48,640 nucleotides of DNA from Octopus bimaculoides (Eukaryota), in NCBI RefSeq assembly GCF_001194135.2, contig NC_068984.1, positions 125,351,123-125,399,762 on the forward strand, given 5' to 3'. The position numbers were made by a program, and so were the translations under genes. Under the pieces are notes generated by a model, which did not search any database, was not told where the DNA came from, and saw only the letters and a list, made by a program, of their open reading frames with translations. Every line of letters starts with the position of its first letter. The first letter of the stretch is position 1. Below, piece by piece: positions 1 through 46,902 of this stretch.

Positions 1-65
<65 letters not shown>
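1..65. repeat. (CA)n microsatellite, one of many dinucleotide arrays in the window
   Basis: Direct reading of the sequence. Confidence 0.98.
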
Positions 66-67
<2 letters not shown>

Positions 68-68
68 A

Positions 69-180
69 GAGCTCTCACACTCTTTCTGTCAATTAAATTC
101 ATTCACAAGGCATTGGTCGGCACGGGACTACAGTAGAAGACACTTGTTACATGTGCCTCACACCGAAGTTGATCGGAAGG
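69..180 (-). mobile_element. Degenerate SINE fragment (CORE-SINE-like)
   Basis: The reverse complement contains caagtgtcttctactgtag...ccgaccaatgccttgtgaatgaattt, homologous to the copies at 40428-40581 (+) and 27210-27380 (-). Confidence 0.45.
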
Positions 181-769
181 ACTAACACATTTTCCATTCA
201 AATATACTATAAATCAAAAGAGCAAAAATTGCCAATCGATTCCACATCTTGGATTCTGGTGGCCCTAAACAAAAATTTCGCCAGTGAAACATTTCTTTAA
301 GATTTTAATGATGTCAAAACACCAAGCCTCTTTACACGCCATATCTTCGGAAGACATATATCTTTGTGACAAAGACCATATGTGGTTGTGTGGCTGGCAA
401 GTAATAGCAGCGAATTCCCAATAGCAGCAAATTCCCATTAAAGTATACTCTATATTGACCTTGCCATAATAATGTCACATTGAATAATTCTAATCCTAGA
501 TACACAATGTCTCAAGCAAATTTACTGGATAGTAATGCTTAAGTAGATTTGATCACGTGTACGTTCCGTTAGAGGTCACTTAGGACAAAATGACAATGAC
601 TATATGCACAACGACAACAACAACAACAGCCACATCAGCAACAGAAATAAGTTTGCTTTTAATCCACGTAACACACACATAAAATATATTCATTCATCTT
701 CCGCGTGTCACAAGGATAAATATTTATCCGTTGCTTGTCAGAATTTCTTCGTTTGGCTTTTCCCAAATC

Positions 770-770
<1 letters not shown>

Positions 771-845
<75 letters not shown>

Positions 846-910
846 GGTGGTGATGGTGGTGGTGGTGGTGGTGCTAGTGGTGGTGGTGGTAGTGGCGGCG
901 TTAGTAGTGG
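771..910. repeat. (AGT)n followed by degenerate (GGT)n microsatellite
   Basis: Direct reading; this repeat is the source of the poly-V, poly-S and poly-L ORFs at 604-989. Confidence 0.93.
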
Positions 911-1013
911 TGATGGTAGGTTCATTATGGCAGTAGTGATGGGGACAATAGTGGAGTTGATAATAAGAGTGGGATTTTGCTACTGCTGAACTACCATATC
1001 TATCAATATATGA

Positions 1014-1047
<34 letters not shown>

Positions 1048-1569
1048 AAGAGAGAGGGCGTTTGTATGTGTGTGCATGACTATGTATTCGTATATATGTG
1101 CGTGCTTGTGTGTGCGTGTGTGTATGTGTGTGTGTGTGTGTGTGTCTTGTGGGGGTGTATGTTTTTGTGCACGTATGCAAATATGTTATATATAAGTATA
1201 CATACATATACCCTAGTGTAGAAATATTCGTTGAAAACACATTGATTGGCACTATATTGAAAGACAAATTGGTCGAACGTTAAATTAATCGAAAACCTTA
1301 ATAGAAGAAAAAGCCAATATTCGTCGAAATTTTAATATTTTTTCAAAGCAATTTCAAAAAAAGATTATTTTTAAAAATTATGCAACGATTCATTTATACG
1401 TTAATTAACTATAATGTTTTATGGTATCAAAATATGACAACTTGAAAACACACACCAAATGTATGCAAGTGAAAATATATATAATAACACTATAGGTAAA
1501 GTAAGAAAAAAAAAGAATAAGTTTGTAGTAAGTAAAAAGCAAGCACGTATTGAGGATGTTTCTCATATT

Positions 1570-1624
<55 letters not shown>

Positions 1625-1837
1625 CTTAGCGAGAACTTTGGCTAAAGCACACGAGGTTAGACAGAACGAAGATATTAACAGTCTGTTTGCATCATCCACG
1701 CCACCTTCGTAAACTGTGAATTGTTCGTCCTAACGTTCTTGGAAATCTTTTCCTGAATTGCTAACTCTTTATTTCATTATGTTTAGGGAGGTTCATTATG
1801 CTAGTGAAAGTAATAAAATAAACACACACACTGGTTC

Positions 1838-2025
1838 AATACCGGTGTTGGTTTCTTTACATACTCGTAACTTAGTGTTTCGGCAAAAAGGATCATATAG
1901 AATAAGTAGCCGGCTTTATAAAAAAAAAAGCAAGTACTGGAGTTGATTTGCTCAATTAAACCCTTGAAGGCCGTGCCCCAGTATGGCCATAGTCCAACGA
2001 CTAAAACAGGTAAAAATTAAAAGAT
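1838..2025 (+). mobile_element. Degenerate SINE 3' portion
   Basis: Shares cgtaacttag..ttcggcaaaa..atagaataagta and gccccagtatggcc..agtc..gactaaaacaggtaaaa with fragments at 5320-5410 (-), 27083-27170 (-) and 40762-40820 (+). Confidence 0.5.
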
Positions 2026-5000
2026 AAATCATAGAGAATTCTTAAGTAGTGGTGGAGAGAGTTTTCCTTTTATCATGCGACCTGGTTAATGCGGTGACAT
2101 TTGTTCTACCAAAAAATAACCGGGATACGTTTTATCAAAAATTGCGAAATGAGACGGTATACATCATCCTGAATGGTGTGATTAGCCATTGTTTAATTCT
2201 TTGGCACGAATGCTCAAAAAACATTTCTCCAAAGAAGGACCGCATTAATGATCATATTGAAATCTGGGATGAACAGTTTAGTACCAGCGTTACATCACAT
2301 TCACATATTTATTGTGTTAAACGTTGGACATAAAAAGAAGCAGCTTATTGATGCTCAGTTAGTTATTCTATAAAACGGTGCTTCTGTTATGACAAAAAAA
2401 TGTCACAAACAAAAAATAACCCATGTTTCTTCAGAAAGAATTTGAACTGTTGTGCTGAAATATGGAAACACAAACGTTCTGGTCTTTTTTTTTTTTTTTT
2501 TTGAAGCATTGCATATAAGCCTGGAATTAAATAAACAAATCAACTTTTGTTTGGCCATGCAAACAGAAAAAGTAGAACTAAAAACGTAAGTATATATATA
2601 TACATATATATACATNNNNNNNNNNNNNNNNNNNNNNNNNNNNNNNNNNNNNNNNNNNNNNNNNNNNNNNNNNNNNNNNNNNNNNNNNNNNNNNNNNNNN
2701 NNNNNNNNNNNNNNNNNNNNNNNNNNNNNNNNNNNNCCTCTCGACGGCATCATTGCGCACCCCATCTCACTGAAGTTAGGCCCCACTGGCCACATCAACT
2801 AGTTATCAGATTTTGCTCGATATTCTCCTAGTCATTGCTCATCGTTTCTTTTTAACCAAATCCAGTAGCTTGCCTTTTCCACTGTAGTTTTGGTATCAAT
2901 CATGGTGGTATTTGCTTTACGATGAGTTAGGCCTAACGATTACGACAGTCGCCTCACACTGTGTCCAACGAATCCTCTACTTCCGACAGGGTAATTCAAG
3001 GGCCGAGAGTTTCGCGTATTAGTTCTTATCAAGCTTATCAAATCATCATTGTCAATATTTCCTTTCCTGTAACTATGTTTATTTTCTTTAAAAACTCCAC
3101 ATAGCCTGAAAATGAACAGAAAATATATATAATTTTAAATAATAATTTACTCTAGTTTTAAAATTACATTAAATTGTTTAAGTCTATGAGTCACCATTTA
3201 GTTTCCATGTGTTTTTTCTGTGTTTTTCTATAAACATGTCTTTCGACCAATTTGTCATATAAATAGATATAGATATAGATATATCCTGTGTTGACTCAAG
3301 ATGATTAAATTACCTCGGCATGCAATGAAGTAACCTATAAGTAGAGTCTATTATATCTTGTGCACTTTAACGCTGTCACTACTACATGTTGGGGGTTACA
3401 CACGAATGATTTTCTTTGATGAAACATAATCTTGATAAGAGAGAAACAAACAAACAGAAGCAAAGAAACAGCACCAAGCCGATCGTGATTTCCCTTAAGG
3501 ATCTTGTATGTTTATATTGGCTTTGTTATAGCTTATATACATTTTGGTAATAACAGATTACATTTGCGCAAGATTCTCGCAAGGTTATTTATTTTAATGA
3601 TAAAAATTTAAGCGAAAAAAGAGAAACCCGACGAAATACGAATAAAAGCCTCTTGTCAGTTATGCACATAATTTTTGGTCATTGTTTCATGTATTATTTT
3701 CGTATGCTTTTTATGAATTAACTCGATTCTCTAGAGATGTGCCAAAGACAGGAAGTTCTAACAGAAGTCATTCGAATTTTTAGATAAGTTCATGTTATTT
3801 CGACGTGCGAGTTACACCGTAAAAAAAAACCCACTGGGTAAATAAGCAACTTTTTGTTAAATTTATTTTATATCTGTGAACTCTTAAGATTTCTTTAACA
3901 TACATATAAGCGTGTCTGACATTCGAAACGTGGCAGTACAATAACAATGTTTTGTTGTTGTTTTTTTACATTTCCGGTTTCAAAATTCATTGAAAGTCTA
4001 TTATCGCCTTTTGTTGTTTCCAAGCCCTGTTATTTTTGCTTCTGTTGTCATTGTTGCTGTTAGTAATTTCTCTCGAGAAATGGAACAAACCCCCTCCTTT
4101 TTTTTTGTCGATAAATAAGTAAAATTATCTACTATGATACATCTCATTTGAAACAATTGCGACAGGCGATGTTGTTCGTGAAAATATATCAATGTTATTT
4201 TTACATATTTTCTATATACAGTCTAGTAAAAAAAAAAATGTTATATTAGTTAACGTTATGACATCACCGTTGTCTAATATTCAAGGAATCATGTTGTGTA
4301 GTTAGGAACATTGAGAAAGAACTATATTTAATTTCAGTTTGTTTTTACATGCCTGATCTTGAGTTGATTCAAATAAATCGCCCTTTTATAGAGATACAGT
4401 TAAAAAAAGGGGGCATAGGATCAGGTTTCTTTAAACCACCAGACCCTTGTTCACCACTCGGGGGAAGGAGATTACAAGGCTGACATTTTGAATGATTTCT
4501 GCGTAAACTTTTCCCAAATAGTGTAAATATTTTCTTAAACTGAAGTCGTAAACATTTTTTTATGTAGTTCTTGTTCGCATCATCCGTGTTAATCATAGTT
4601 ACGTTTTTGAAAAATGACACGACTACAGCTTTGTAAGGGATGGGTTAGAGGTGGTTAAACACCCACAGTGTGTTACTAGTACTCATGTTACAAATTGTTG
4701 AGTGATGAAGATCAAAGTCGATAGTGGGAGAAAGCAATTGGTGTAAACTGCTGATGACACTCTTACACAAAGAGAAAATTGGATTATCAACTGGAATAAT
4801 ATAATGTGTTAACCCTCAAGATTCAGAAAGATATTATCATTGAATGATTTTACTGCGCAAATCTGAGACAAGAGAGGAATAACAAATTGGGGGATAACAA
4901 TGCCAAACTTATATTAAGCATCTTAAAAGTAGGGCGTTATTAAATCTGATGATGAATTTGGTAAGAAAATAAATGATACCTGTGAATTTCAAATCTGCCC

Positions 5001-5271
5001 CGGACATTCAAGTTCGCTTTTTTTTTTTATTATTGTTGTTAAAATTATTTAAAAACGAGAATTGAATTTGTGTCAAAACAAAGGTAAACGCATGCGGGGC
5101 ATTGAAACACGTACAAGTTTTGTAAATATCTTAGCATTTTCTGTCTTACTTCGAAAACTCGGCAGCACATCTGTACGCAATTCATGGCACATGGATGTAT
5201 CACAGCGCAGAGCCTACAGCTTTGTAAAGAATGGGCAAATGTCATCTGTCGCCCCAGCCTGCAGCGAAAGC

Positions 5272-5410
5272 CATGTGAGTGAATTTAGAAGACGGAAACT
5301 GAAAGAAGCCTGGTATATATTTGTTTCAGTCATTTGACTGCGGCCATGCTGGAGCATCGCCTTTAGTCGAGCAAATCGACCCCAGGACTTATTCTTCGTA
5401 AGCCTAGTAC
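5272..5410. mobile_element. Two abutting SINE fragments (CORE-like tail on +, second family on -)
   Basis: gtgagtgaattt..gacggaaactgaaagaagcc is followed by the reverse of gaataagtcctggggtcgatttgctcgact...ctccagcatggccgcagtcaaatgactgaaacaa. Confidence 0.5.
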
Positions 5411-6196
5411 TTACTGCTGCAATAGAATATTTTTCACAGATTCCAGAATCTATAGAGTATCGAACAAATGGCATAGCAGGTAGAGTATTCTATAAGTTGC
5501 AGGGCAGTAATAAAAATCAAACAAACTGAAAAATTGGTAGAAAATCGAATTTAATAACGTCCTTATATATCGTGCCTTATCGTTTATTTATCTACCTACC
5601 CTAATACTTTTCGTAGAAATAACTGTAACTTATGTGCGAGTAGGTGTGTCTCTCTGTATTTGTGTGTCTGCCTGCATTTCTCGATATATATAATAAATAA
5701 TATATATTATTGCTGTTATTATTGGGGATTTTTTTATGTCTCAAAAAAAAAAAAAAATAGTACCTATATAAAAAAAAATATAACACAAGCTTGGTAAGAT
5801 AGCAACAGAATACTGAAGGGAAGTACAATCAATCAAACGGACTGTACTATCCTTCTAAAATTTCCGACTTGGGTCTAGTCTAGTAATCAATGTTATAGCA
5901 GGCCTGTGGCGTATTTTGTTGAAGATGAAAAACTATAGAAGATAAATGGAGATCATCTGATGTTGCTTAAGACGATAATTGTGGTGAATACATGACATTA
6001 AAACACAACGATTTCGTGTCATTTCATAAACACATAAAGCTTTCGATCTATCCAAATGTTTGCCAATAGTTCATTTCGTTTTCATACAATAATTTCTTGA
6101 GCACTATATCTGATATTCATGACAATGATGAGGATGATGATGATGATGAATATGGTTTGATTATTTTTACAAATTTTTTAATGTTTTTATTTGTAG

Positions 6197-6405
6197 AAAT
6201 TCACGAATGTGCCAACTGCGGTTCTGGAGACAATGTGATATGGCAGAGTGACACTAGGCACTTCTTGTGCAGGCCATGCACAGCAAGCAATGCAGCCCAC
6301 GCAGCCAGTACCAGTCACACTCTGGAAAAACCCTCGTCAATGTCAAGGTCATCAGTGATGAACCAATCGTCTTCTGGGAGATCAGTGAACCAGAACAATT
6401 TCACG
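6197..6405 (+). CDS. GATA456: GATA exon encoding a degenerate N-terminal zinc finger and a Ser-rich linker
   Basis: ttgtag|AAATTCAC acceptor and ACG|gtaagc donor. Translation (E)IHECANCGSGDNVIWQSDTRHFLCRPC...NNFT. The phase-0 end joins in frame to 19229. Confidence 0.8.
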
Positions 6406-6444
6406 GTAAGCCATAGTTCTTTAAATAGTAATAACAATAATTAC

Positions 6445-6477
<33 letters not shown>

Positions 6478-6879
6478 TAATTCGTTTTATTGGCCACAAG
6501 GTCTAATATCAATTAAAAACATCTAAGGACAAAGACAGGACGAAGGTTACAAAAGGTTTTGTCCGAAAAGGTAGGAAAGTTCGTCTAAACAGAGGAAGAA
6601 ATCGGAGAAAGATATAATAAATAAATAAGTAAATAGATAAATAAATAAATAGAACTCCCAAAGGGGGAGGCGCTTCGAAAAAGGAAAGGTTACACGTGGA
6701 AAAACCCATAAAACCACGGGAGCCTGGTCAGAAAAAATAAGAAAGGGGTATAGAGCCCTTTCTCCTTTTACATTACCCTTTTTTTTTCTTTTTTTTTTCT
6801 ACAAGTGTATTCTCAGAATTGGTCCGTTTATACTGGCCATTCTTCCAACAATCACCCATCGTTCAACGAATTTGCTATG

Positions 6880-8700: not shown

Positions 8701-9795
8701 NNNNNNNNNNNNNNNNNNNNNNNNNNNNNNNNNNNNNNNNNNNNNNNNNNNNNNNNNNNNNNNNNNNNNNNNNNNNNNNNNNNNNNNNNNNNNNNNNNNN
8801 NNNNNNNNNNNNNNNNNNNNNNNNNNNNNNNNNNNNNNNNNNNNNNNNNNNNNNNNNNNNNNNNNNNNNNNNNNNNNNNNNNNNNNNNNNNNNNNNNNNN
8901 NNNNNNNNNNNNNNNNNNNNNNNNNNNNNNNNNNNNNNNNNNNNNNNNNNNNNNNNNNNNNNNNNNNNNNNNNNNNNNNNNNNNNNNNNNNNNNNNNNNN
9001 NNNNNNNNNNNNNNNNNNNNNNNNNNNNNNNNNNNNNNNNNNNNNNNNNNNNNNNNNNNNNNNNNNNNNNNNNNNNNNNNNNNNNNNNNNNNNNNNNNNN
9101 NNNNNNNNNNNNNNNNNNNNNNNNNNNNNNNNNNNNNNNNNNNNNNNNNNNNNNNNNNNNNNNNNNNNNNNNNNNNNNNNNNNNNNNNNNNNNNNNNNNN
9201 NNNNNNNNNNNNNNNNNNNNNNNNNNNNNNNNNNNNNNNNNNNNNNNNNNNNNNNNNNNNNNNNNNNNNNNNNNNNTATATGTATACACACACACACGTA
9301 CATACTTGTATGGATATACTTACATACACATATGATACGTACATGTATGTATGTATGTATGTATGTATGTATAATATGTATAAACGGATACATAACATGT
9401 ATATGTCTCTCACGCAAAGTAAATACATGAAAGGCTACAAATAACAGTAATAATAACAACAACAACAACAACAACAACAACAACGACAGCAAAGATTTTT
9501 ATCAATTAATACCTGACTCCAGTGCTATCAACATTGTCAATCTACCTTGTCGTTTCATTCAACATTTCACTGTCGTCCGCCCACCCATCGTCCTCACCTC
9601 ATTCTAAAAAACAGCCAGACCCGTATTCTCCTTCTTGAGCACTTCGCCCCGCAACATACCCACCTCTACTTTAGATAACACAGAAATCAGCATCAAGATA
9701 ACCCACAAGAGAAACAAAAGAGGAAAAGGTATAGGTTTTGAAGACGGGAAGAGAGAGGAAGATAGATGGAGGAAATGAAAGAGAAAGGAAGAAAT

Positions 9796-10487: not shown

Positions 10488-12197
10488 AACTCACAACCTC
10501 CAATATTCATTCAACCCACATTCACACACAAGCAAAATCCATTTATATATGTATGCGTAACTCTAAATCATACACGCACAATTCACTTTTATACGAGCCA
10601 ACGAGGGGCGACAGTACTTAGAAATAGCGGCCCAAAATATCATCAAATCGTTCGCTAACATCTGACTGAAAATGAAGGTCGCTTTTTGTTAGATACATTA
10701 TGATTGTTAACGAAACAACCATGTGGAGTCATAAGTGGAATTTTTGTGATCACCGTTTTACTCGATGGGAAAAGATCTCAGCTAAAGGAATAATAAACAG
10801 TCTATAGATACACAGACACACGTGTCTGAGTATACGCCAGTATGCACACATATATTTGTATATGTGTGTGTATGTATGTGTGTGCGCGCGCGAATGTATA
10901 TACACATACTTTCGCTCACAAACATGTATTTATTTATCTGTGTGTGTGTGTGTGTGTGTACGAGTGACAAGCATTCAGCATTTGGTAGGAATTGTGCATA
11001 ATTCTAATAACAGCATGACTCACCTCAGCATGACTGAGAGTTTCATGGGCGCGTTTGGCGCGCCTATCTCATCAGATCATAGGAGCAGATTGAGAGATTT
11101 TTCTTTGCTTCTGTGCCTGAGTTCGGGTCACGCGTCTGGACCGGATGTTGTCAGGATGCTGGTGCCACTCAGACGGCAAATAAATAGACGGCAAATACCG
11201 GGTGTCTCATTCATAGCATTAATACAACGTGAATTGAACTGACCAATAAAAGCCATCTTGAATTTCTCCTAAAAAGTTTCTCATTCTGCTCCCAGTATCT
11301 AATGAGATGAACGTGTCCACGCACCCATGAAACTGTAAGTCATATGAAGCTTAATAAAACGCTTATTAAAAGTATATATACATACATATAGTTAGATTTA
11401 CACGTATAACTATATANNNNNNNNNNNNNNNNNNNNNNNNNNNNNNNNNNNNNNNNNNNNNNNNNNNNNNNNNNNNNNNNNNNNNNNNNNNNNNNNNNNN
11501 NNNNNNNNNNNNNNNNNNNNNNNNNNNNNNNNNNNNNNNNNNNNNNNNNNNNNNNNNNNNNNNNNNNNNNNNNNNNNNNNNNNNNNNNNNNNNNNNNNNN
11601 NNNNNNNNNNNNNNNNNNNNNNNNNNNNNNNNNNNNNNNNNNNNNNNNNNNNNNNNNNNNNNNNNNNNNNNNNNNNNNNNNNNNNNNNNNNNNNNNNNNN
11701 NNNNNNNNNNNNNNNNNNNNNNNNNNNNNNNNNNNNNNNNNNNNNNNNNNNNNNNNNNNNNNNNNNNNNNNNNNNNNNNNNNNNNNNNNNNNNNNNNNNN
11801 NNNNNNNNNNNNNNNNNNNNNNNNNNNNNNNNNNNNNNNNNNNNNNNNNNNNNNNNNNNNNNNNNNNNNNNNNNNNNNNNNNNNNNNNNNNNNNNNNNNN
11901 NNNNNNNNNNNNNNNNNNNNNNNNNNNNNNNNNNNNNNNNNNNNNNNNNNNNNNNNNNNNNNNNNNNNNNNNNNNNNNNNNNNNNNNNNNNNNNNNNNNN
12001 NNNNNNNNNNNNNNNNNNNNNNNNNNNNNNNNNNNNNNNNNNNNNNNNNNNNNNNNNNNNNNNNNNNNNNNNNNNNNNNNNNNNNNNNNNNNNNNNNNNN
12101 NNNNNNNNNNNNNNNNNNNNNNNNNNNNNNNNNNNNNNNNNNNNNNNNNNNNNNNNNNNNNNNNNNNNNNNNNNNNNNNNNNNNNNNNNNATATATA

Positions 12198-12941
12198 TAA
12201 GGTGTGTTATGAGCATTTATAGAAAACACAGTCCTATATAAACTCAACAAACAATTAAAGATGAAGAAGAGAAGATGTTAAAAGTTTTAATCGATGCATT
12301 CGATCGTTTCAAATGGTAACACCAGTATGTAAGAAACATGAATGAAATTAAATTAATTATAATTAATTTAATTATATATTACCATTCTCGTCAGTGCAAA
12401 AAAATGAAGGAAACATAAGAAAAGTCATAACAGAAGAAGAAATATATTGTTACAGGACATTGAGTCTGTGTCGGATAACTCATTCAGATACTAATAAAAA
12501 AACAGAATGTGAAAGATGAAATATAAAATATAAAAACATGGTTACGTAGTGTTGAGTCTAGTTGTGTAAGAACTAAAACAGTTTTAGTCCTTACACAACT
12601 AGACTCATAACCTTGTTTTTATATTTTACATTCCATCTTTCATATTCTTTTTTTATTGGATTCAATGCAGTGTTCTGTAACAATATATTTCTTCTTCTCT
12701 TACAATTTTTCTTATGTTTCCTTCATTTTTTGCACTGATGAGAATGGTAATATATAATTTAATTAATTATAATTAATTTAATCTCTTCTCTGTTCTTTAC
12801 ATGTTGGTGTTACCATTTGAAACGATCGTATGCATTAATTAAAATGTTATCAAACTTTTAACATCTCTTCTCTTCTCCATTTTTAATTGTTTGTTGAGTT
12901 TATATAAGACTGTGTGCTATAAATGCTCATAATACACCTTG
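12198..12941. mobile_element. Fully palindromic foldback/MITE (about 744 bp) with Tc1/mariner-type ends
   Basis: Arms 12198-12579 and 12581-12941 are reverse complements along their whole length (roughly 85% by eye, with indels). The centre is aactaaaac-a-gttttagt. Ends read TA-(t/c)AAGGTGT and are flanked by TA. Confidence 0.78.
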
Positions 12942-13129
12942 TACTTGTATAATTATCATATTTTTAATAAAATACTTGCAAAAGCAAGCTACAAATTTAA
13001 TATGAAGAATCTTTATTAGAAATCTAACTTTGGACCCCACAAAGTAAAACTGTTCTAATTGAACTCAACCTTTCTCATATATATACACACATACGCACAC
13101 GCACGCACGCACACACGCACACGCACACG

Positions 13130-14363: not shown

Positions 14364-15041
14364 ATATATATNNNNNNNNNNNNNNNNNNNNNNNNNNNNN
14401 NNNNNNNNNNNNNNNNNNNNNNNNNNNNNNNNNNNNNNNNNNNNNNNNNNNNNNNNNNNNNNNNNNNNNNNNNNNNNNNNNNNNNNNNNNNNNNNNNNNN
14501 NNNNNNNNNNNNNNNNNNNNNNNNNNNNNNNNNNNNNNNNNNNNNNNNNNNNNNNNNNNNNNNNNNNNNNNNNNNNNNNNNNNNNNNNNNNNNNNNNNNN
14601 NNNNNNNNNNNNNNNNNNNNNNNNNNNNNNNNNNNNNNNNNNNNNNNNNNNNNNNNNNNNNNNNNNNNNNNNNNNNNNNNNNNNNNNNNNNNNNNNNNNN
14701 NNNNNNNNNNNNNNNNNNNNNNNNNNNNNNNNNNNNNNNNNNNNNNNNNNNNNNNNNNNNNNNNNNNNNNNNNNNNNNNNNNNNNNNNNNNNNNNNNNNN
14801 NNNNNNNNNNNNNNNNNNNNNNNNNNNNNNNNNNNNNNNNNNNNNNNNNNNNNNNNNNNNNNNNNNNNNNNNNNNNNNNNNNNNNNNNNNNNNNNNNNNN
14901 NNNNNNNNNNNNNNNNNNNNNNNNNNNNNNNNNNNNNNNNNNNNNNNNNNNNNNNNNNNNNNNNNNNNNNNNNNNNNNNNNNNNNNNNNNNNNNNNNNNN
15001 NNNNNNNNNNNNNNNNNNNNNNNNNNNNNNNNNNNNNNNNN

Positions 15042-15532: not shown

Positions 15533-16233
15533 TGTGTCTGAGAGAGAGTCGGTGTATATGTTTGAAGGTGTGTGTGTGTGTGAGAGAGAGAAAGAGAGTC
15601 GTGTGTGTGTGTGTGTGTGTNNNNNNNNNNNNNNNNNNNNNNNNNNNNNNNNNNNNNNNNNNNNNNNNNNNNNNNNNNNNNNNNNNNNNNNNNNNNNNNN
15701 NNNNNNNNNNNNNNNNNNNNNNNNNNNNNNNNNNNNNNNNNNNNNNNNNNNNNNNNNNNNNNNNNNNNNNNNNNNNNNNNNNNNNNNNNNNNNNNNNNNN
15801 NNNNNNNNNNNNNNNNNNNNNNNNNNNNNNNNNNNNNNNNNNNNNNNNNNNNNNNNNNNNNNNNNNNNNNNNNNNNNNNNNNNNNNNNNNNNNNNNNNNN
15901 NNNNNNNNNNNNNNNNNNNNNNNNNNNNNNNNNNNNNNNNNNNNNNNNNNNNNNNNNNNNNNNNNNNNNNNNNNNNNNNNNNNNNNNNNNNNNNNNNNNN
16001 NNNNNNNNNNNNNNNNNNNNNNNNNNNNNNNNNNNNNNNNNNNNNNNNNNNNNNNNNNNNNNNNNNNNNNNNNNNNNNNNNNNNNNNNNNNNNNNNNNNN
16101 NNNNNNNNNNNNNNNNNNNNNNNNNNNNNNNNNNNNNNNNNNNNNNNNNNNNNNNNNNNNNNNNNNNNNNNNNNNNNNNNNNNNNNNNNNNNNNNNNNNN
16201 NNNNNNNNNNNNNNNNNNNNNNNNNNNNNNNNN

Positions 16234-19228: not shown

Positions 19229-19351
19229 AACCAACGAAGAAATGGTCTTTCCTGTGCCAATTGTCAGACAAGAACTACTACACTTTGGCGTAGAAATGCA
19301 GAAGGAGACCCAGTCTGTAATGCATGTGGTCTATACTATAAACTGCACCAG
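19229..19351 (+). CDS. GATA456: GATA exon encoding the C-terminal GATA zinc finger
   Basis: ttttag|AAC acceptor and CAG|gtatgt donor; 123 nt = [41 protein letters not shown], a canonical C-X2-C-X17-C-X2-C finger. Missed by the ORF track. Confidence 0.97.
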
Positions 19352-19363
19352 GTATGTTTACGT

Positions 19364-19394
<31 letters not shown>

Positions 19395-19776
19395 TGGAGG
19401 CGCAATGGCCCAGTGGTTAGGGCAGCGAACTCGCAGTCATAGGATTGCGGTTTCGATTCCTAGACCGGGCGTTGTGAGTGTTTATTGAGCGAAAACACCT
19501 AAAGCGCCACGAGGCTCCGGCAGGGGATGGTGGTGAACCCTGCTGTACTCTTCCACCACAACTTTCTCTCACTCTTACTTCCTGTTTCTGTTGTGCCTAT
19601 AATTCAAAGGGTCAGCCTTGTCACACTGTGTCACGCTGAATATCCCCGAGAACTACGTTAAGGGTACACTTGTCTGTGGAGTGCTCAGCCACTTGCACGT
19701 TAATTTCACGTGCAGGCTGTTCCGTTGATCGGATCAACTGGAACCCTCGTCGTCGTAAGCGACGGAGTGCCAACAA
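19395..19776 (+). mobile_element. Full-length tRNA-derived SINE
   Basis: tRNA-like head with A-box (tggcccagtggttagg) and B-box (ggtttcgattcc), an unrelated body, two 3' hairpins and a caacaa tail. It sits within a (GT)n tract. Confidence 0.9.
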
Positions 19777-20950: not shown

Positions 20951-21077
20951 GTGAATCGTCCGATGTCTATGAAGAAAGAAGGCATTCAAACTAGAAAGCG
21001 AAAAGAGAAAAAGAACACCAAAGTTCGCTCCTCAAGTAAAGACATGCTTAACGATACCAGCAATACATCATCATTCG
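20951..21077 (+). CDS. GATA456: GATA exon encoding the basic tail/NLS after the C-finger
   Basis: ttcag|GTG acceptor and TTCG|gtaaga donor; VNRPMSMKKEGIQTRKRKEKKNTKVRSSSKDMLNDTSNTSSF. The KLHQ|VNRP intron position is typical of GATA genes. Confidence 0.95.
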
Positions 21078-21109
21078 GTAAGATTCCACTAACAATATGA
21101 TAGTATGTG

Positions 21110-21158
<49 letters not shown>

Positions 21159-22011
21159 GTGTGTATGTGCATGTGTGTGTGTTCGCGCGCGCGTGGGTGC
21201 GTGCGTGTGTATGTATTTATATGTATGTAACTAGAGACATGGCCAACCCGCGCTATTTGTTCCAGAACTCTTTCCTTAAGCAACTTTACTTAACTCTGAC
21301 ATGTTTATGTTATTATATACATCACACATCTATCCTTGTTTATCACTGATTCACTCATCGCTGATCCTGGATACCACTCTACGCTTAATTGTGAATCGTG
21401 TTGCGCTTATCATGGAATGATCTGTGATATCAGGAATCAGTGACCAGTCAAAGATTTTTCTTGAACCGTAAAAGCGCGCCTTAGTCGACCTTTCAAAATG
21501 CTTAGGATAACTTAAGGTCTCAGAAGGTAACCTAATTTCACCCCCCCCCCATATGTTTTATTAATCATTCATTTCTGATTCATTTAACACGATGATTTTT
21601 GGAACCATAAACCCGTGATAAACGAGGATAACCGTATATTACGGAACCACTACGTATTTGAGACGTCATAGAAATCCTGCTTTTACATAATGACTAAAAT
21701 GGAGATATAGTGGAATGGTCTTTCAGTTATTTTCTCCAAACATTAGAGAATCTCTGGTCATCAGTGCAAGGATTAATGAACCATCTGATAATTACACTGA
21801 ATTCTGGTTATTGCAATTAACAACCATGGCGATAACATAAAGCAGTATCAGAATGCAGGTAAAATTTTTTGAACTTTTATTCAGAAACTAAACACTTTAT
21901 CAGAGGGTCCAACACTGTATACACAAAAAATGGTTTAACGATAAGAAGCCCTTTTTAATTCTATCCTCGTATCTCCCATTTTATATAACTTTTTATTTAT
22001 TTATTTTCCAG

Positions 22012-22331
22012 AATCTAAGACCTCAAGCAGTAGTATTTCAAGATGCTCCGTTCAGAACCCGACTGTGCTAGCAGCCTTACAGGGGAACCACCAAAATAGT
22101 TCCCCCATGCATCATTCCTTCATACACCAATCACCAACCAACTCTGCTAATATAATCACTAATAACAGTACGATTCAAAGTCTGCGAAGCAATCAGGAGT
22201 TCGTTTACCCGCTGCTATCACCCCAGCGCCATCAACAGTCTCCATTATCATCAGCACAGCAACATCAGCAGCAGCAGCAACAACAACAACAGCAGCAACA
22301 ACACTCCCCGCAGGAACAGCAGCGGCAACAA

Positions 22332-22366
<35 letters not shown>

Positions 22367-22772: not shown

Positions 22773-25700
22773 CCATTCAAAATAAACGCCATGTTTTAAA
22801 CTAAATCCCATACCATCCATGGCACAATACTTGAGAAAAAAATGCTTGCAAACGGCAACATTTAATTCACATAAGCTTTTTGTTTTCTGGACATTATTTT
22901 TTTTTTTTTTCATTCTGATTTTCTTCTATTGAGGATTTTCTTTTTGTTTTGTTAATTTTTCAATTATTATTTTTTTTTTGTTTTAAATTTTTATTGATTT
23001 ATAAGATTTTGAAAGAAGTGAAAAACGATAAAAAAAAAAGAGTTCTTATAATATATTTTCTTTTTTTTTTTTTTGGTCAGAATTACATATTTTGATATCC
23101 GACGAGAATTATAATTCTCTTTTATTTCATTTTGCTGTGCGGGTCACCGTGGGTATGACGAAAATTTCTTTGTTACTCTAGTCTGTGGTCCCTGGTTCTA
23201 ATTTTATTGTGGAACACATTTTTAATTCCTGTATAACGCTAATGACTGTGACAATTCCAAGAATGCTATCCTGTCCATTTCTTTCCAATTCTCTTAGCCT
23301 GAAGAAATATAACATATTTAATTACGCACATACACCAATGTGGTGAAGAGACCAAGAGGTAATATATCCACCAGCTAATTTGGTGAAGCAGTTTCGCTCC
23401 CCAATTGAAGCGGTTATTCTTGATTTTTAACTCAAATCCACTCATAAGTCTACAGCTTACCATTCACTTTTCTCCTCATATATACAGTGCCTTTATTTCT
23501 AACTGAAACAATATAAAACCGTAATTTTTTGATCCTCACGTAACATAGAAAGTAATGTGGAATCGAACCGAGGTGATGACTGAGTCCCATTTCTATTTGG
23601 AATGCCAAGCTTCAATTCACTTGTGAAGTCACTGCTTGTCTCATTAAATCAACACTGAAATACTTGATGATCTACAATAAAGATATCAAGTATCTATTCT
23701 TCCTTCTCCCAGTCAATCTAGCTATATAAAAGATGTTGCTTACCATTTCGTCTGCAGTGTGAACAGTAGTCATTGAAATGTGCTGCACACTACTTATAGC
23801 AATGAGAGAAATGCTTCATTCGTAACAACTTCGTTTCCTTGTAAGACGGAAACTAAATTCGACCAAGGTTACAATTCCGAGAAGTATAGGTTCGAACAGT
23901 TTGACTTGTTCTTGAATGTCTAATAAAAGCCAAATCTTTGGATACCCCTAAATGGATAAGGAGATGATTCAACGGTAATCCATACCCATAGCATTTTTTT
24001 TTTTTTTTGCTAGACCTCTTTATCGGAGGATATGGACAACTATATGATTAACGTTGTTGGGGGTTGGCGCTTCATGGTAAGACGTAGGCAGGAAGATAAT
24101 TGTAAAAGAAATAACTGGTTAACTTACCCTTAGTAGAGCCCCAACCCACCAAACGATTTAGGCATCATATATGAAAAAAATTTTAAATCACGTTTATGAC
24201 GACTCTCGTAGCGTAGTACCAAGATCTCTTAAAACTGTGTTAAACAAACCGGTTGTGGTTCGCAGTTTTAAACTGTTCATTTTATAATCATATTGTTAAT
24301 GATATTTGAAATGTCATACCCGTTATAAAAATTCCCTATTTCTCTCCCCTTACACATTTTCAAACTATACATCATTTGTAAAGATTAAGAATGAATTTGT
24401 AACATATTATTTTAAATAAATAAAAAAGATATAAACGTTTTGTTTCTTTCTCAACAAAAATAAAAGAATNNNNNNNNNNNNNNNNNNNNNNNNNNNNNNN
24501 NNNNNNNNNNNNNNNNNNNNNNNNNNNNNNNNNNNNNNNNNNNNNNNNNNNNNNNNNNNNNNNNNNNNNNNNNNNNNNNNNNNNNNNNNNNNNNNNNNNN
24601 NNNNNNNNNNNNNNNNNNNNNNNNNNNNNNNNNNNNNNNNNNNNNNNNNNNNNNNNNNNNNNNNNNNNNNNNNNNNNNNNNNNNNNNNNNNNNNNNNNNN
24701 NNNNNNNNNNNNNNNNNNNNNNNNNNNNNNNNNNNNNNNNNNNNNNNNNNNNNNNNNNNNNNNNNNNNNNNNNNNNNNNNNNNNNNNNNNNNNNNNNNNN
24801 NNNNNNNNNNNNNNNNNNNNNNNNNNNNNNNNNNNNNNNNNNNNNNNNNNNNNNNNNNNNNNNNNNNNNNNNNNNNNNNNNNNNNNNNNNNNNNNNNNNN
24901 NNNNNNNNNNNNNNNNNNNNNNNNNNNNNNNNNNNNNNNNNNNNNNNNNNNNNNNNNNNNNNNNNNNNNNNNNNNNNNNNNNNNNNNNNNNNNNNNNNNN
25001 NNNNNNNNNNNNNNNNNNNNNNNNNNNNNNNNNNNNNNNNNNNNNNNNNNNNNNNNNNNNNNNNNNNNNNNNNNNNNNNNNNNNNNNNNNNNNNNNNNNN
25101 NNNNNNNNNNNNNNNNNNNNNNNNNNNNNNNNNNNNNNNNNNNNNNNNNNNNNNNNNNNNNNNNNNNNNNNNNNNNNNNNNNNNNNNNNNNNNNNNNNNN
25201 NNNNNNNNNNNNNNNNNNNNNNNNNNNNNNNNNNNNNNNNNNNNNNNNNNNNNNNNNNNNNNNNNNNNNNNNNNNNNNNNNNATATATATATATATATAT
25301 ATATACGCACATATGTGCAAAAGTACATGTAGAAGTAAATGTATATGCAGTTGAATATATTTGCATCTATGTATATACTTGCATTCATATGTATATATAT
25401 ATGTTGCGCCAAGTTTGTATGTTTGTATGTTTCTACGTTCGTTGTTTGTGGATTAAATATATTTCCCCATACAAGTTGACTTGACGTTATAATTGGTTTC
25501 AGAAAGGAAATGACCACGTCAAGCAATCTGTTTATTTCAAATGAACTTTAAGCTAAATAATATAATTAATAAATAATTAATAATTAAAATTATTGCATTT
25601 TGTCTTTTATATATGACTTCCATATATTTCGTTCTTATATATTAAGCTAGTAACTTCAAGAGGAGAATCAGATTCGAAATTCAAAATGTTGAAACATTTT

Positions 25701-27841: not shown

Positions 27842-29053
27842 TATTATGTTGTCAAGAAAGTTCTTGCGATTTTTAACCTTTACATTCAGATGCACATATC
27901 TCGGCTCAAACAAAACTTTATCAATCGAAATAAACACCATCAGAATCAACACACTTTTGCCAATGCAAACAAGTTTATTTATGACAGTAGCGTAAAAACC
28001 CTACGTTCTGGTGGCGATGAAGACGTTGAAGGCGTTTTTGCCATCGTCTTGTTTTTTGAAGCATTTCTCACGCACGAAGTTGCCGAGGTGCTTGAAAAAG
28101 TAGTAGTCGGTAGGCGACAGGTCTGGTGAGTATGGCGGATGAGGCAGAGTTTTGTAGCCCAATTCGTTCAACTTCTGCAGGGTCAGTTGTGCGACGTGCG
28201 GCCGAGCGTTGTCGTNNNNNNNNNNNNNNNNNNNNNNNNNNNNNNNNNNNNNNNNNNNNNNNNNNNNNNNNNNNNNNNNNNNNNNNNNNNNNNNNNNNNN
28301 NNNNNNNNNNNNNNNNNNNNNNNNNNNNNNNNNNNNNNNNNNNNNNNNNNNNNNNNNNNNNNNNNNNNNNNNNNNNNNNNNNNNNNNNNNNNNNNNNNNN
28401 NNNNNNNNNNNNNNNNNNNNNNNNNNNNNNNNNNNNNNNNNNNNNNNNNNNNNNNNNNNNNNNNNNNNNNNNNNNNNNNNNNNNNNNNNNNNNNNNNNNN
28501 NNNNNNNNNNNNNNNNNNNNNNNNNNNNNNNNNNNNNNNNNNNNNNNNNNNNNNNNNNNNNNNNNNNNNNNNNNNNNNNNNNNNNNNNNNNNNNNNNNNN
28601 NNNNNNNNNNNNNNNNNNNNNNNNNNNNNNNNNNNNNNNNNNNNNNAAGACGACACTTCAAAACGGCGTTTTTTATTTTTCTTTTTGGTTATCGTTCAAT
28701 TCGTGCGGCATCCATTTCTCAAGTATTTTTGCTTTTCCAATCTCTTTCAACTGGTTGGAAATTGTCGTATATGTTACGTTTAATTCAGAAGCAAGATCTC
28801 GAAAAGTTGTGCATGGATTGGCTTCGACTAAGGCTCTTAGCTGATCGTTGTCAACATCCGATGGCCGACCACTACGCTTATCATCTTCAAGACTCTCGCC
28901 ACCGTTGCGAAATTTCTTGAACCACCATTCTACTGTACGTTCATTTGTGGTTCCTGGGCCAAACGCATCGTTGATATCGTGAGCTGTTTCAGCAACTTTT
29001 CGGCCTAGCTTGAACTGGAATAAGAAGATTGTGCGAATTTGCTTTTTGTCCAT
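27842..29053 (-). mobile_element. Decayed mariner transposon (D,D34D), interrupted by an assembly gap
   Basis: N-terminus MDKKQIRTIFLFQFKLG...RTVEWWFKKFR...EDDKRSGRP...KWMPHEL from 29053. C-terminus DNARPH...HPPYSPDLSPTDY has exactly 34 residues between the two Asp. In-frame stop and frameshifts are present; a TIR-like end tattatgttgtcaagaaagttcttgcgattttt lies at about 27842. Confidence 0.92.
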
Positions 29054-29607
29054 GTTTTATTCAGCGTTCCGGAAAAATGGCCTAATTATTTACAAAGAAA
29101 AAAAGTAACACGATTAAATAGAGCAAAAAACGTGCTTTAAAGTGATATATAAAGTCAAAGTAATTTAACGAAAATTAATTTGAAAATACATCATTTAAAA
29201 CCAAAATTTAAAATATCTTCTGTACAATAAGCCTCCACAAATGGATCACATATATTTTTATTTATACAATTGATAAGACATCTGATTAGGAAATAAATAT
29301 TTAAAATTAAGTGATGTCTGTATACATACATATGTATATGCCTTCACACAATCCTCAGACTGTGCCCATATAGCATAACAAGCTACAAACAGAACGATAA
29401 AATGAAAGGAAAAAAACGAGAAAAGACGAGAATGAAGAAGACGTAAAAGGTGGAAGGCTGAAAAACCGGAAATGAAAAAGAAAACTGAAAAAGCAAGACG
29501 GGAGCATTAGAGTTATGTCCCCTTTGACCGTAAAGTCATAATGCTGGAAGAATAGTGGCCTAGAATCTGTAGTACAGCTACTCAAATTGGAGAGGTTGGT
29601 ACTTTCC

Positions 29608-33118: not shown

Positions 33119-34128
33119 TTAGTTCAGATTAATTGTAGATAGAGTTTCCAAAGATGATGCTTTTGACTGCTTCCGGATCATATATTCCATCGTTTGCATT
33201 CTCACAGCTTCTGTAGAGTTTTTCGTTGGTTGAAATATGATGATTCTCAGTTTGGGAATCAACATGAACACCAGCACAACTAGAGTATGAAGCTGGGCAG
33301 CTATACATATATAAGAAGAACATACGCCGTGGTTGGGTTCGTTAGCAACACCTACTGACACCAAAACCCATATTAGGAACAGTATAAATAATGTGAAATT
33401 AATTTGTCTTGCTTCGTTAAAGTTTTCCGGGAGTTTCCGTACGCGATACGCTTTGTAAATACTGCCAAGTATAAGAATTGTAAACCAAACGAAAGCTACG
33501 GCGTGTTGGTGGTACCAAGCTAGAGAACATCCAAGTGATACAGATGTGTCTTGAACAGTATAGAAATCCACGGTTGGTTGATGAAAATATGTTGATGCTG
33601 CTAATGAACCACAAATAATTAATTCGATTACCAAAAAGCATAATATCTGCAATCGATCTCGTTTACGTTTTTCTAAATGAAGATTATCAATTGTGGTCGG
33701 TTTAGCGTTGAAGATGCAAAGTATTCGATCCGTTTTAAAATATATAACTAGCACGGATGAAGACATAACAAAGGATAAATAATTTGGTTGCAACATACAG
33801 CGTGTATGAGTTGGCCGACCAATATAGACATATGGGGAAAATATAGAAAGGATCAAAGATACGAATAAGACATATGTCAGCTCCCGATTAGATCCTTTAA
33901 CAATGTGACTGTGGCGGTATTTCACAAAGAATGATAATACTATTAATGTGAACAGGAGACAGCTGCTTGAGAAAAGAAGACTGCCGACAGCGAAATGTCC
34001 GTTCCAAGAAAGGAAATCTTGCGGAAGCTCTTCACAGGACGTGTAATTCTTGTTACTTCCCCATCCTGTTCCGAAACGTTCTGTACAGTTCAGACAAGAC
34101 GCCATATTGTAGGCATTTGTAAATTGCC
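33119..34128 (-). CDS. Class C GPCR exon 8 (end of CRD, 7TM domain, C-tail)
   Basis: cttag|GG acceptor. Class C 7TM motifs VKGSNRELTY, KTDRILCIF, RKLPENFNEARQINF and PKLRIIIFQPTKNS; TAA stop at 33119. Confidence 0.96.
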
Positions 34129-34210
34129 CTAAGTAAAGAGGAAAAAAAACAGTATTGAAAGTATTATTTGGCTCTGGTTAATTTTCATCAGAAATAACGA
34201 ACGAAGCAGA

Positions 34211-34266: not shown

Positions 34267-34868
34267 CATAGATCAGGATTCATGTGAATCAGGCACTTAA
34301 ATGGTAAGGCACCGGGTCGGGTCGACAAGTAAAATGTGTACACAACAAAAATAGAGGAATACTTATGCAGGTACCGAAGTATAGGCAGAAAGATATTCAG
34401 GTTATGTATACGATTAACTGTACCCGACTGATTATATCAATAGACCTGAGGCTAAACAAGAAACGTTCATTGTAATAAATGTATGGTCCATAATATACTT
34501 CGGATCTACGCGAGGAGCAGATTCCAAGACTGGTGAATAATTAATGAATAAATAGCAACAAATGGATAATATTTCAATTTACTGCGGCTGTTTCCAACGA
34601 ATTTTCAATTGATTAATGGAAACATTACAGCATTAGAATAAACCGTTTCCATCAGGTGAATACATGAAACACAGCATTCAAAAACATTCAAAAACTAACG
34701 GGATTTGCATCTTCATGACTTTATGATCCTAGGTCACGGAATCATCACGGAATCATCCCAGTTGCGTACTGGGATGTATCTAATCGACAAGCCCCCTCCC
34801 TCAAAATTCTAGGCCTTGTGCCTAGAGTAGAAAAGAATTTTCAAAGAGATGAAATGGGCGAACAGTAC

Positions 34869-34985
34869 CTTTACCACAGGGGACGCATGTCCAGCATTCC
34901 TTGTCCGATGCTAAAGCTAAGCGTGTCCCAGGTGGGCAGGGCTGGTCACAACGAGATATCACTACATCAGCTTCACCTTTCCATA
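34869..34985 (-). CDS. Class C GPCR exon 7 (cysteine-rich domain)
   Basis: ttttgtag| acceptor; (V)WKGEADVVISRCDQPCPPGTRLALASDKECWTCVPCGK(G); donor |gtactg, with an alternative in-frame donor |gtaaag 6 nt upstream. Confidence 0.9.
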
Positions 34986-35274
34986 CTACAAAATGAAGAA
35001 AATCCTTAAATTAATGGATATTATACGTGTACATGCACACACACAAATACATATGTATTCATACACACACACACACACACACACGTGTGTATATGTGGAT
35101 ACGGTAAACTCACACGCACACATATATAAATATATATACTAGCTTACCTGTGTCATAAAAAATGACAAGGTTTTCAAAGAAATAATCTTAAACTATCTGA
35201 TAAAGACATCGACATGACATACATTGCATGTATTTCATATGGACTTATATAGGAAGTAGAAGAAAAACAAGAGG

Positions 35275-36110: not shown

Positions 36111-36440
36111 NNNNNNNNNNTATATATATATATATATATACAAACTTTGGAAGCGTCGAATGTGGTTGGTATTTTACAGACAAGAAAGTAAATTTCGAAC
36201 GCAGTAAGGCTGTAAGACAACAGTGAAAGACCGAGTATTTTTCGTGATAAGACGTAAGAAAGTTGCCAACAAGTGACTGCAGGATGGCACTGTTTCGACT
36301 GCTGGCAACTTTTTGCGTCTTATAAGGGTATATATATATATATATAAGTAGGCAGGCGTGTGTGTGTGTGTGTATGTATGTGTGCATGAGAGAAAGAGGA
36401 TAAATTTAGAACTGTATTTATATTTTACGAAATTTCTTAC

Positions 36441-37098
36441 CGATATCGTTCTGGTCCATAACTAAATATGAACAATTCCAATGTCCAACTTTTCTGTAGA
36501 ACAAATGGCCGTCTTCTTTCTTTTGTATATTGAACAAGGAGAATGCTCCAGAAATATCTCCAAATTCGTTAAACTCAATAAAGCCGGACTGACCATCAAA
36601 TTTTGTTTGTTTTATCATTTCAAATATTTCTTTGTTCGAAATAAACCTCTTCAGACAGGAACCGTTGCTGCACAGTAATTTATGTAACGCATGCGCAATA
36701 ACATATACTGCGTCCAATACGAACGGTACTTTCTTCAACATTAGGTAATCGAACAATTCCCCTGATTTTCCACTCGACTGCAAATTACGAAAGCATGCTT
36801 CTTGAAAATTGCGGTGACCTATTTGAGGTATCTCATCATGTATCCAATTCGTTTCGTTTTGTTGAGTAATATTGGAACAAATGTGCTTAATAATGAGATA
36901 TTCTTGAAACCAAGTATCTAACTCTGTGACGTCTTTTAAAGACAGGCTTTCCAAATATGATTGATAATCGGTTGGAGTTTCGGAATAAGGACGCAACCCC
37001 AGAGTGCCTTCAATAATACTGACATCAAGATTCAAAATTCTTTTATTTAATGTCCAACTTTCTGATGCGAAATATGTGATGTCCGAAAAATTGAATTC
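36441..37098 (-). CDS. Class C GPCR exon 6 (VFT)
   Basis: tttcag| acceptor; EFNFSDITYFASESW...KVPFVLDAVYVIAHALHKLLC...FDGQSGFIEFNEFGD...KVGHW; G|gtaaga donor. Confidence 0.93.
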
Positions 37099-37716
37099 CT
37101 GAAATATCTACGTGGAAGAAAAACAAAAAAAAAACAGCATAATCATTATCGGCTTTTATATAAACAAATACTTATCTGTACACTTTAGAGAAAATGGAAA
37201 TTTCAAGCAAATTTTTTCACCAAAGAGTATTTATGCCACAATTAAAACAAACAGAAATAGTATCGTACTAGGAAGTTGTTTAACCATAAAGAGAAAAATG
37301 AATCACATACATTTTAATATGTTCGGGCGTCTAAAGAGTCGAGCTAGCAGAATGGTTAACTTGCTGGGCAAACACTTAGCGGCATTTCGTTCATTGTTTT
37401 TCCCAGTTGGCTTTAAACGCCAGATCGATTCCAGCCTTAATTGAATATATTGGCGAAAAATTCCGACTATGATCAACTTGTTTTATACTTCCCTTGATTG
37501 TCTTCATAATTTTTTAATTAATAGACTTCTTAATCAACTAATCAGCTGGTCGAATCATATAAACTCATTATCTTCAGGCAAGGCACAATAGAAACAAAAC
37601 AAATAAGATTCAAAGAATATCGTTAAGAAAATGACAAACGAAAGAAAAATAATTAGTTATTTTAAAAAAGTGATTCGGAGAGAATAAATTATGAGAATAA
37701 ATCTTTTTAATGTTAC

Positions 37717-46617: not shown

Positions 46618-46902
46618 ACCTTTCTGCTCCTTATAATATACCACAATAACATTCTGAAGTAATGTACCTTTTTCTATTGTAGCAATATTCTACATTGCTG
46701 TTCAATTCTTAATATAACATACACTCTGTATATACGTTACATGATGACTGTTTTACTCTTTCTTATATAGCGATTCTTTGAATTTGCGCACTAATGAGCA
46801 TATTAAAAAAATATATGTGTCCCTTATAATATATTATATCTTCTAATGTTTCACAATATTCAGCACTATCACATCTCTTCAAAGTCAAAATGAAATACTC
46901 AC

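Follow-up and report, generated by a model that had tools for sequence, protein, structure and literature searches.

Whether the N-finger of GATA factors acts as a DNA-binding helper or as a platform for cofactors is a long-standing question. The window (the whole stretch of 48,640 nucleotides that we analysed) raises it in the following form. It contains a GATA gene in which a canonical C-finger is preceded by a finger that has kept four cysteines and lost most of the residues shared by DNA-binding GATA fingers. Such a finger could be a decaying relic, or it could be retained for a function other than binding DNA. The sequence-only reading of this locus had argued for the latter, and proposed a zinc-binding module that interacts only with proteins. 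Our analysis leads to a related position: it is rather probable that the finger is encoded by a real exon, is under selection, does not bind DNA and is used for docking. Our view of what it would dock to is considerably more tentative.

A six-frame scan of the window found C-X2-C-X16-C-X2-C at 6208-6279 and the canonical pattern C-X2-C-X17-C-X2-C at 19253-19327, on the same strand. No further finger-like sequence besides this C-finger was found in the sequenced part of the window. The X16 pattern lies in an exon (Table 1) with the product IHECANCGSGDNVIWQSDTRHFLCRPCTAS..., whose coding frame begins at 6199. The translation of 6199-6405 is IHECANCGSGDNVIWQSDTRHFLCRPCTASNAAHAASTSHTLEKPSSMSRSSVMNQSSSGRSVNQNNFT, i.e., (x)IHECANCGSGDNVIWQSDTRHFLCRPC followed by a 42-residue linker rich in Ser, Thr and Asn. 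Position 6197 is the first base of the exon and not the start of a codon, and frame 1 of 6197-6290 shows a stop. The peptide and the X16 spacing reported in the sequence-only reading are present, with all four cysteines within 6208-6279, and the changes from WRR to WQS and from NACGLY to RPCTAS, as well as the absence of a basic tail, are all seen in the translation.

The exon is bounded by the acceptor tttaatgtttttatttgtag at 6196/6197 (ending in tttgtag) and the donor ACG/gtaagc at 6405/6406. Its GC content is 0.49, compared with 0.29 in the upstream flank and 0.33 in the downstream flank, and an open frame of its 69 codons has a probability of about 0.006 at the local base composition. A chance open reading frame is ruled out by the splice signals, GC content and open frame, together with the homology and conservation described below. 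The length of the exon leaves a remainder of 2 on division by three, so skipping it would shift the frame, which argues for constitutive inclusion. A GAT-rich tract (6120-6150) and an (AAT)n repeat (6428-6480) extend the open frame around the exon to 136 codons, and a naive ORF caller would report a 127-amino-acid "protein" at 6097-6480 that mixes intron and exon.

Table 1. Exons and finger features of the GATA gene in the window, and the related exon in locus L001
Feature	Coordinates	Strand	Remarks
ZF1 (N-finger) exon	6197-6405	+	209 nt; upstream intron in phase 1, downstream intron in phase 0
Degenerate finger core, E-C-A-N-C ... C-R-P-C	6205-6279	+	four putative zinc ligands kept, DNA-contact residues replaced
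Inter-finger linker part of ZF1 exon	6280-6405	+	low complexity, predicted disordered, without basic tail, not conserved
ZF2 (C-finger) exon	19229-19351	+	41 residues; acceptor ttttag, donor gtatgt; starts in phase 0
3'CD exon (basic tail of C-finger)	20951-21077	+	product VNRPMSMKKEGIQTRKRKEKKNTKVRSSSKDMLNDTSNTSSF(E); acceptor attcag, donor gtaaga; ends in phase 1
Probable last coding exon, up to stop codon	22012-22772	+	Ser/Gln/His-rich with poly-Q; phase-compatible with 3'CD exon
Related exon (L001)	9981-10246 of L001		acceptor ttacag, donor CAG/gtaggt; GC 0.44 vs 0.29-0.32 in flanks

The C-finger exon matches the Pfam family PF00320 with 59.5 bits and encodes a canonical GATA DNA-binding finger. 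The exon of its basic tail reads VNRPMSMKKEGIQTRKRKEKK..., and is followed by the probable last coding exon, whose acceptor, ttatttatttattttccag, has a pyrimidine fraction of 0.85 and is the sole strong in-phase acceptor. Homologues gave no support for this last exon. It contains long poly-Gln and poly-His/Gln tracts, with poly-Cys on the opposite strand; a minus-strand C-X2-C match at 22277-22360 is a spurious all-Cys run, antisense to the poly-Q (CAG) repeat of this exon. The four exons are mutually phase-compatible, have canonical splice sites and contain no stops. The first three match the ZF1/ZF2/3'CD exon layout that Gillis et al. inferred for the ancestral GATA gene (PMC2383905). Splicing of the ZF1 exon to the C-finger exon is compatible with these intron phases. 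A conserved N-terminal exon was found neither at 1-6196 of the window nor in the 10 kb upstream of the related exon in L001 (see below), and the first coding exon or exons probably lie outside the window. The window is part of a draft scaffold, with 12 N runs totalling 4,691 N (e.g., 8701-9276, 11417-12190, 14372-15041, 15621-16233 and 24470-25282). Within the gene, long (GT)n microsatellites at 19352-19400 and 21078-21210 start within about 10-35 nt of two donors, those of the C-finger exon and the basic-tail exon. A tRNA-like sequence resembling a SINE occurs at about 19395-19460, where ARAGORN calls no tRNA.

The class motifs RRxGLxC and QTRKRK are present around the C-finger, and the best matches are of the GATA4/5/6 type; judged by these features, the gene belongs to the GATA456 class. 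The proteins closest in the C-finger and its tail are Lottia LOTGIDRAFT_78934 (P0009; 81.5% identity), Capitella CAPTEDRAFT_121668 (P0103; 80.6%) and an Elysia protein (P0063; 77.6%). With such molluscan and annelid affinities of its C-finger, the gene is probably of a lophotrochozoan, and likely of a molluscan, type; a cephalopod source would fit these affinities and is plausible. Judged by similarity, it may be orthologous to the "GATA456Nc" clade of Gillis et al.

To what extent the first finger is conserved can be judged from one related locus. A HMMER scan of 1.84 billion representative proteins yielded exactly one relative at E<=1e-3, namely P0121 (E 1.2e-8). This ORF belongs to a 59-kb contig in the ENA assembly ERZ21867824 (locus L001). 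The L001 exon reads ...HECANCGSGDMVILQNDTMHYLCSRC... and has the X16 spacing. Its intron phases and its length modulo three are identical to those of the window exon. Of the 27 finger residues, 19 are the same in the two loci, while shuffled sequences share 1.3 on average and never more than 7. According to the Nei-Gojobori method, the 27 finger codons have a pS of 0.94, which is saturated, and a pN of 0.18; for the next 10 codons, which encode linker, the values are 0.65 and 0.53. A blastn comparison did not match the flanks of one exon to those of the other, and tblastn recovers the finger alone, the linker and introns having diverged beyond recognition. With a pN far below pS, and next to a linker and introns that show no conservation, the finger is therefore selected rather than decaying. 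These codon comparisons indicate that the finger core, unlike the linker, has been under purifying selection ever since the divergence of the two loci. This constraint is measured against one relative, either an orthologue or an old paralogue, which is too few for site-wise rates. The view that the finger is not decaying, which had been put forward from the window sequence, is thus borne out by a second, diverged locus. The same reading had named the Cys, Glu, Gly and His positions as the places at which to look for constraint, and all are invariant between the two loci.

Other searches for relatives were negative. In a word-indexed protein search, the exon alone gave no match, an alignment of the two sequences gave nothing beyond P0121, and a query with both fingers returned only short generic GATA factors, none of which matches the window protein. 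These negatives are weak because the index misses some short ORFs: P0121 was itself missed, yet it shares HECANCGSGD with the window. A scan of JGI metagenomes with back-translated patterns produced 87 pattern matches, of which tblastn confirmed 0. The window also has a fragment of a Mos1/mariner transposase (HTH_48) at 28676-29056 on the minus strand (61.6 bits), and fragments about 37% identical to it flank the related exon in L001, at 9377-9577 (-) and 12813-12971 (+). The occurrence of such fragments in both sequences suggests that the same transposon family populates both genomes.

Formally, the first finger falls outside the Pfam GATA family. It has no match to PF00320 even at E<=10 (the gathering score is 26.8 bits), has neither WRR nor NACGLY, and lacks the basic tail. 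Its X16 spacing, which it shares with L001, differs from the X17 spacing in all 109 canonical fingers that we extracted. However, a phmmer search of all PDB sequences returned only GATA chains at E<0.05. The matches include GATA1 (3vd6; 2.3e-5), GATA3 (4hc7; 5.7e-5) and the isolated N-finger of GATA1 (1gnf/1y0j; 2.8e-3), and the only non-GATA row is uS14, at E 1.3. Broken down by stretch, the HMMER scores against the PDB are 18.8 bits for the N-finger and 8.5 for the C-finger. We aligned the finger by MAFFT with 29 GATA factors and by HMMER with the GATA1 and GATA3 chains, and both alignments place the missing loop residue at GATA1 position 219.

Residue frequencies in 109 two-finger GATA factors also identify the finger. 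It keeps E203, G208, D218, T220, H222, Y/F223 and L224, which have frequencies of 0.84-0.97 in the 109 N-fingers. Six of these residues (E203, D218, T220, H222, Y/F223 and L224) occur at frequencies of at least 0.84 in N-fingers and at most 0.02 in C-fingers; G208 is the one of the seven that is not nearly absent from C-fingers. The four cysteines, which are the putative zinc ligands, are invariant in the window and L001. By these sequence comparisons, the finger is clearly homologous by descent to ZF1, i.e., the N-finger. A duplicated C-finger is ruled out, since the retained residues are specific to N-fingers. The assignment of this exon to the N-finger of a GATA gene in the sequence-only reading agrees with the PDB matches, the N-finger-specific residues, and the order and phases of the exons.

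The finger has lost most of what N- and C-fingers have in common. We built this contrast from residues conserved in both finger types versus residues specific to N-fingers, independently of any contact list. The common DNA-binding core includes T212, L214, W215, R216, R217, G221, N226, A227, G229, L230, Y231, K233, R239 and P240. Of this core, 2/15 residues survive in the window and 1/15 in L001, while 6/14 and 7/14 of the N-finger-specific residues do. The difference is modest, with Fisher p values of 0.11 (window) and 0.014 (L001). Losses in the window finger comprise T212, R216, R217, N226, A227, G229, L230, Y231, K233 and the NRPLIKPxRR tail, and neither the DNA-contact motif T-x-L-W-R-R / C-N-A-C-G-L-Y nor a tail of the form NRPLxKP(K/R)RR is found. 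In L001, LQN and SRCASS take the places of WQS and RPCTAS. The 43-residue segment of finger and tail has a net charge of -2 in both copies, in contrast to a mean of +4.0 in canonical N-fingers. That the finger has lost DNA binding is well supported by these sequence features, from which we infer the absence of binding, and the loss of DNA-contact residues and basic tail noted earlier is evident in both the shared core and the charge. Along with the four cysteines, the finger keeps those residues of the GATA treble-clef that are hydrophobic or lie in turns.

Predictions of the fold are consistent with this picture, but are not decisive. AF2 modelled the finger as two strands (residues 13-16 and 21-24) and a helix (25-35), with a pLDDT of 84-86 using an alignment of 30 GATA sequences. 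With only the two degenerate sequences, the pLDDT was about 81 and the secondary structure was unchanged. The linker has a pLDDT of about 44-56 and is predicted to be disordered. In a Foldseek search with the isolated finger model, the best match was uS14 (E 0.15), followed by GATA3 (E 0.27-0.4; 4hc7_B at E 0.4 with an rmsd of 2.4 A over 35 columns); these top matches are treble-clef proteins, and none was significant. A 153-residue model with both fingers matches the dual-finger crystal structures of GATA3 and GATA1, although these matches are driven by the C-finger. Three features call for caution as to an intact fold: position 215, which is Trp in 109/109 canonical fingers, is Leu in L001; the loop is one residue short; and in the window copy a Pro follows the third Cys.

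The residues at which GATA1 is said to contact FOG are E203, V205, G208, A209, H222 and Y223, a list that reportedly goes back to Fox 1998 and Liew 2005. At these six positions, the window finger has E, A, G, S, H and F, and it has Q at position 216. The MAFFT and HMMER alignments agree on all seven residues, and match those given in the sequence-only reading. E, G, H and also D218 are identical to GATA1, while V205 is replaced by A, A209 by S and Y223 by F (Y in L001). Each of the three replacements occurs in canonical two-finger GATA factors, at frequencies of 0.04-0.17, so that the description of the FOG face as largely kept stands: each of the six positions is either kept or conservatively replaced. 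Using contact sets that are only partly verified, we found residues of canonical type at 8/8 cofactor-face positions (203, 205, 206, 208, 209, 218, 222 and 223) and at 0/12 DNA-face positions (p 8e-6 in a test that is post hoc).

Published variants connect these positions to function. V205 is required for binding to FOG or U-shaped (Ush) in mouse and fly (PMC8844375), and variants of G208 and D218 impair FOG1 binding (PMC9600848). With R216Q, palindromic GATA sites are bound less well, whereas the affinity for FOG1 is not reduced (PMC9600848). Two claims that had accompanied the original observation, namely that V205 matters for FOG binding and that R216Q spares it, are in line with this literature. 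In the fly, all functions specific to the SerpentNC isoform depend on binding to U-shaped (PMC8844375). On cephalopod GATA factors or a lophotrochozoan FOG, our literature search found nothing relevant.

Given these observations, the gene product could work as follows. The canonical C-finger and its basic tail would perform all recognition of WGATAR. The N-finger, on a flexible and disordered tether of about 50 residues, would no longer contact DNA, and would be held as a surface, stabilised by zinc, on which a cofactor docks. A CCHC finger of the FOG/U-shaped type would be the leading candidate for the partner, since what the finger has retained are N-finger-specific residues of the cofactor face. 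Nonetheless, we consider it somewhat unlikely that FOG/Ush is the partner. We are about as doubtful of the full evolutionary scenario, in which, after a duplication of GATA456 in the molluscan, possibly cephalopod, lineage, one paralogue would have shed the DNA contacts of its N-finger and kept, under purifying selection, only the cofactor face for a FOG/Ush-type partner, making it a natural separation-of-function N-finger.

The same data could also reflect a selected zinc module whose partner or role is not of the FOG/Ush type, which we regard as possible but unlikely. Such a module might bind another cofactor, as the GATA1 N-finger does LMO2 and the TAL1 complex, self-associate or fold back and modulate the C-finger; the N-finger of GATA1 has been reported with several partners (PMC9600848, PMC13534945). 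Selection and the loss of DNA-binding residues do not name a partner, and the position that matters most for FOG binding, V205 (PMC8844375), is occupied by Ala. Moreover, R202, which has a frequency of 0.94 in N-fingers, is His in both copies, and the conserved GSGD at 208-211, which is absent from the canonical set (the frequency of G210 is 0 and that of D211 is 0.01), suggests a lineage-specific surface. Part of the residue pattern could be due to structural constraint alone, since the zinc knuckle lies within the N-terminal block that is retained. On the other hand, the residues retained at 203, 208, 209 (A/S), 218, 222 and 223 (Y/F) are those linked to FOG binding, and Ala205, Ser209 and Phe223 are found in N-fingers that are otherwise canonical. 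A role in which the finger binds nucleic acid in a non-canonical manner, e.g., another DNA motif or RNA, is highly improbable. Nucleic-acid binding is known from treble-clef zinc fingers in many settings, the ribosomal protein uS14 heads the Foldseek matches, and there are still one or two Arg residues close to the third Cys. However, these Arg residues are not conserved between the copies (R221/R226 in one and M221/R227 in the other), the basic tail is absent and the net charge is negative where that of canonical N-fingers is positive.

Two further explanations concern the exon itself. If the exon were an alternative one, a canonical ZF1 used in other isoforms could be hidden in an assembly gap or beyond the sequence. 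There is room for one, as the 12.8-kb intron that separates the two finger exons has five N runs (2,696 of 12,823 bases) and L001, which extends 10 kb downstream, stops short of its own C-finger exon; Drosophila serpent, whose isoforms include or lack the N-finger, provides a precedent (PMC2383905, PMC8844375). Yet the gap-free L001 sequence has no second finger-like sequence within 10 kb on either side, nor has the sequenced part of the window, and the window exon already has the position, boundaries and N-finger-specific residues of ZF1, as well as a length at which simple skipping breaks the frame. These facts make an alternative exon improbable. Still less probable is a decaying relic, i.e., a former N-finger exon that drifts neutrally or an unspliced pseudo-exon, in what would be a single-finger GATA factor. 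The failure of the finger to match Pfam GATA, its one-residue deletion, the replacement of most family-invariant residues and the frequent loss of N-fingers among protostome GATA456 paralogues (PMC2383905) would all fit with decay. However, neutral drift is difficult to reconcile with a pN so far below a saturated pS, with finger residues and four cysteines that are shared across loci whose introns cannot be aligned, or with an open frame whose splice sites, intron phases and raised GC content recur in both loci.

A selected finger of this kind can be compared with several known systems. Canonical N-fingers, such as those of GATA1-6, Pannier and SerpentNC, have the same exon position and boundaries and four cysteines, and their strand-strand-helix layout is predicted for the window finger too. 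They differ in having an X17 loop instead of X16, WRR instead of WQS or LQN, NACGLY instead of RPCTAS or SRCASS, a basic tail instead of none, and a net charge of +4 instead of -2. The linker in the window gene is also some 20-30 residues longer. The Gln at position 216 in both loci is that of human GATA1 R216Q (X-linked thrombocytopenia with thalassaemia), but the latter is a single pathogenic substitution within a finger that is otherwise intact, whereas Gln216 is fixed here together with about 15 other losses.

Degenerate first fingers have precedents. In nematodes, 28/30 ELT-2 orthologues have a degenerate C4 finger that is poorly conserved, has a spacing of 9-20 residues and is presumed not to bind DNA (PMC7712238), so the appeal to ELT-2 in the sequence-only reading was sound. 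As in the window gene, the ELT-2 finger is non-canonical in spacing, and only one functional GATA domain follows it. In contrast to the weak conservation, variable spacing and very long branches of ELT-2, the window finger has a constant X16, retains the signature residues of N-fingers and is 70% identical (19/27) to its relative despite saturated synonymous sites. Drosophila GATAe has a highly divergent first finger and GATAd has none (PMC2383905), while the SerpentC isoform is made without the N-finger (PMC8844375). These are likewise GATA456-class proteins in which the first finger was degraded or dropped independently, but they belong to another lineage, while the window gene has lophotrochozoan-type C-finger relatives, intact Cys ligands and evidence of constraint. 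We saw no alternative isoform of the window gene among the sequences examined. Degenerate or lost first fingers are thus known in nematode and fly, and what is new here is the lineage and the fact that the N-finger signature and cofactor face are under constraint while the DNA-binding core is erased. The window gene would join the nematode and insect examples of independent N-finger loss as a lophotrochozoan one.

The Lottia, Capitella and Elysia proteins that are closest in the C-finger and tail have N-fingers that are themselves partly changed. These fingers still have the X17 spacing, the first Arg after the Trp, and NAC, and the window finger has gone further. Together with P0096, the three proteins (P0009, P0103 and P0063) form a set of GATA456-type proteins of lophotrochozoan or unidentified origin with partly degraded N-fingers. 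The basic tail of the N-finger is lost in Lottia P0009 and Elysia P0063; the Capitella P0103 finger has WRW for WRR and GVH (GVHV) for GLY, and also has ECANCGS; and P0096 reads CQRCAVYN. The pattern suggests a stepwise relaxation of DNA binding by the N-finger in one group of paralogues, and the window finger seems to lie at the extreme of a trend among the Lottia, Capitella and Elysia paralogues.

If the docking role of the finger is correct, the gene would be an evolutionary separation-of-function allele and a natural reagent for studying the cofactor face by itself. It would amount to a natural counterpart of the laboratory experiment with the GATA1 alleles R216Q and V205G. There is also a practical consequence for genome annotation. 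As neither Pfam nor a word-indexed search sees the ZF1 exon, annotations may miss the exon or call the protein single-fingered.

The window also contains another gene. Downstream of the GATA gene, and in tail-to-tail orientation to it, is a class C GPCR gene on the minus strand, with matches to 7tm_3 (33122-34177; 139.7 bits), NCD3G (34825-35010) and ANF_receptor (36421-37107). Two open segments on the same strand, at 46888-47073 and 47988-48638, are without a Pfam match and are possible 5' exons of the GPCR gene.
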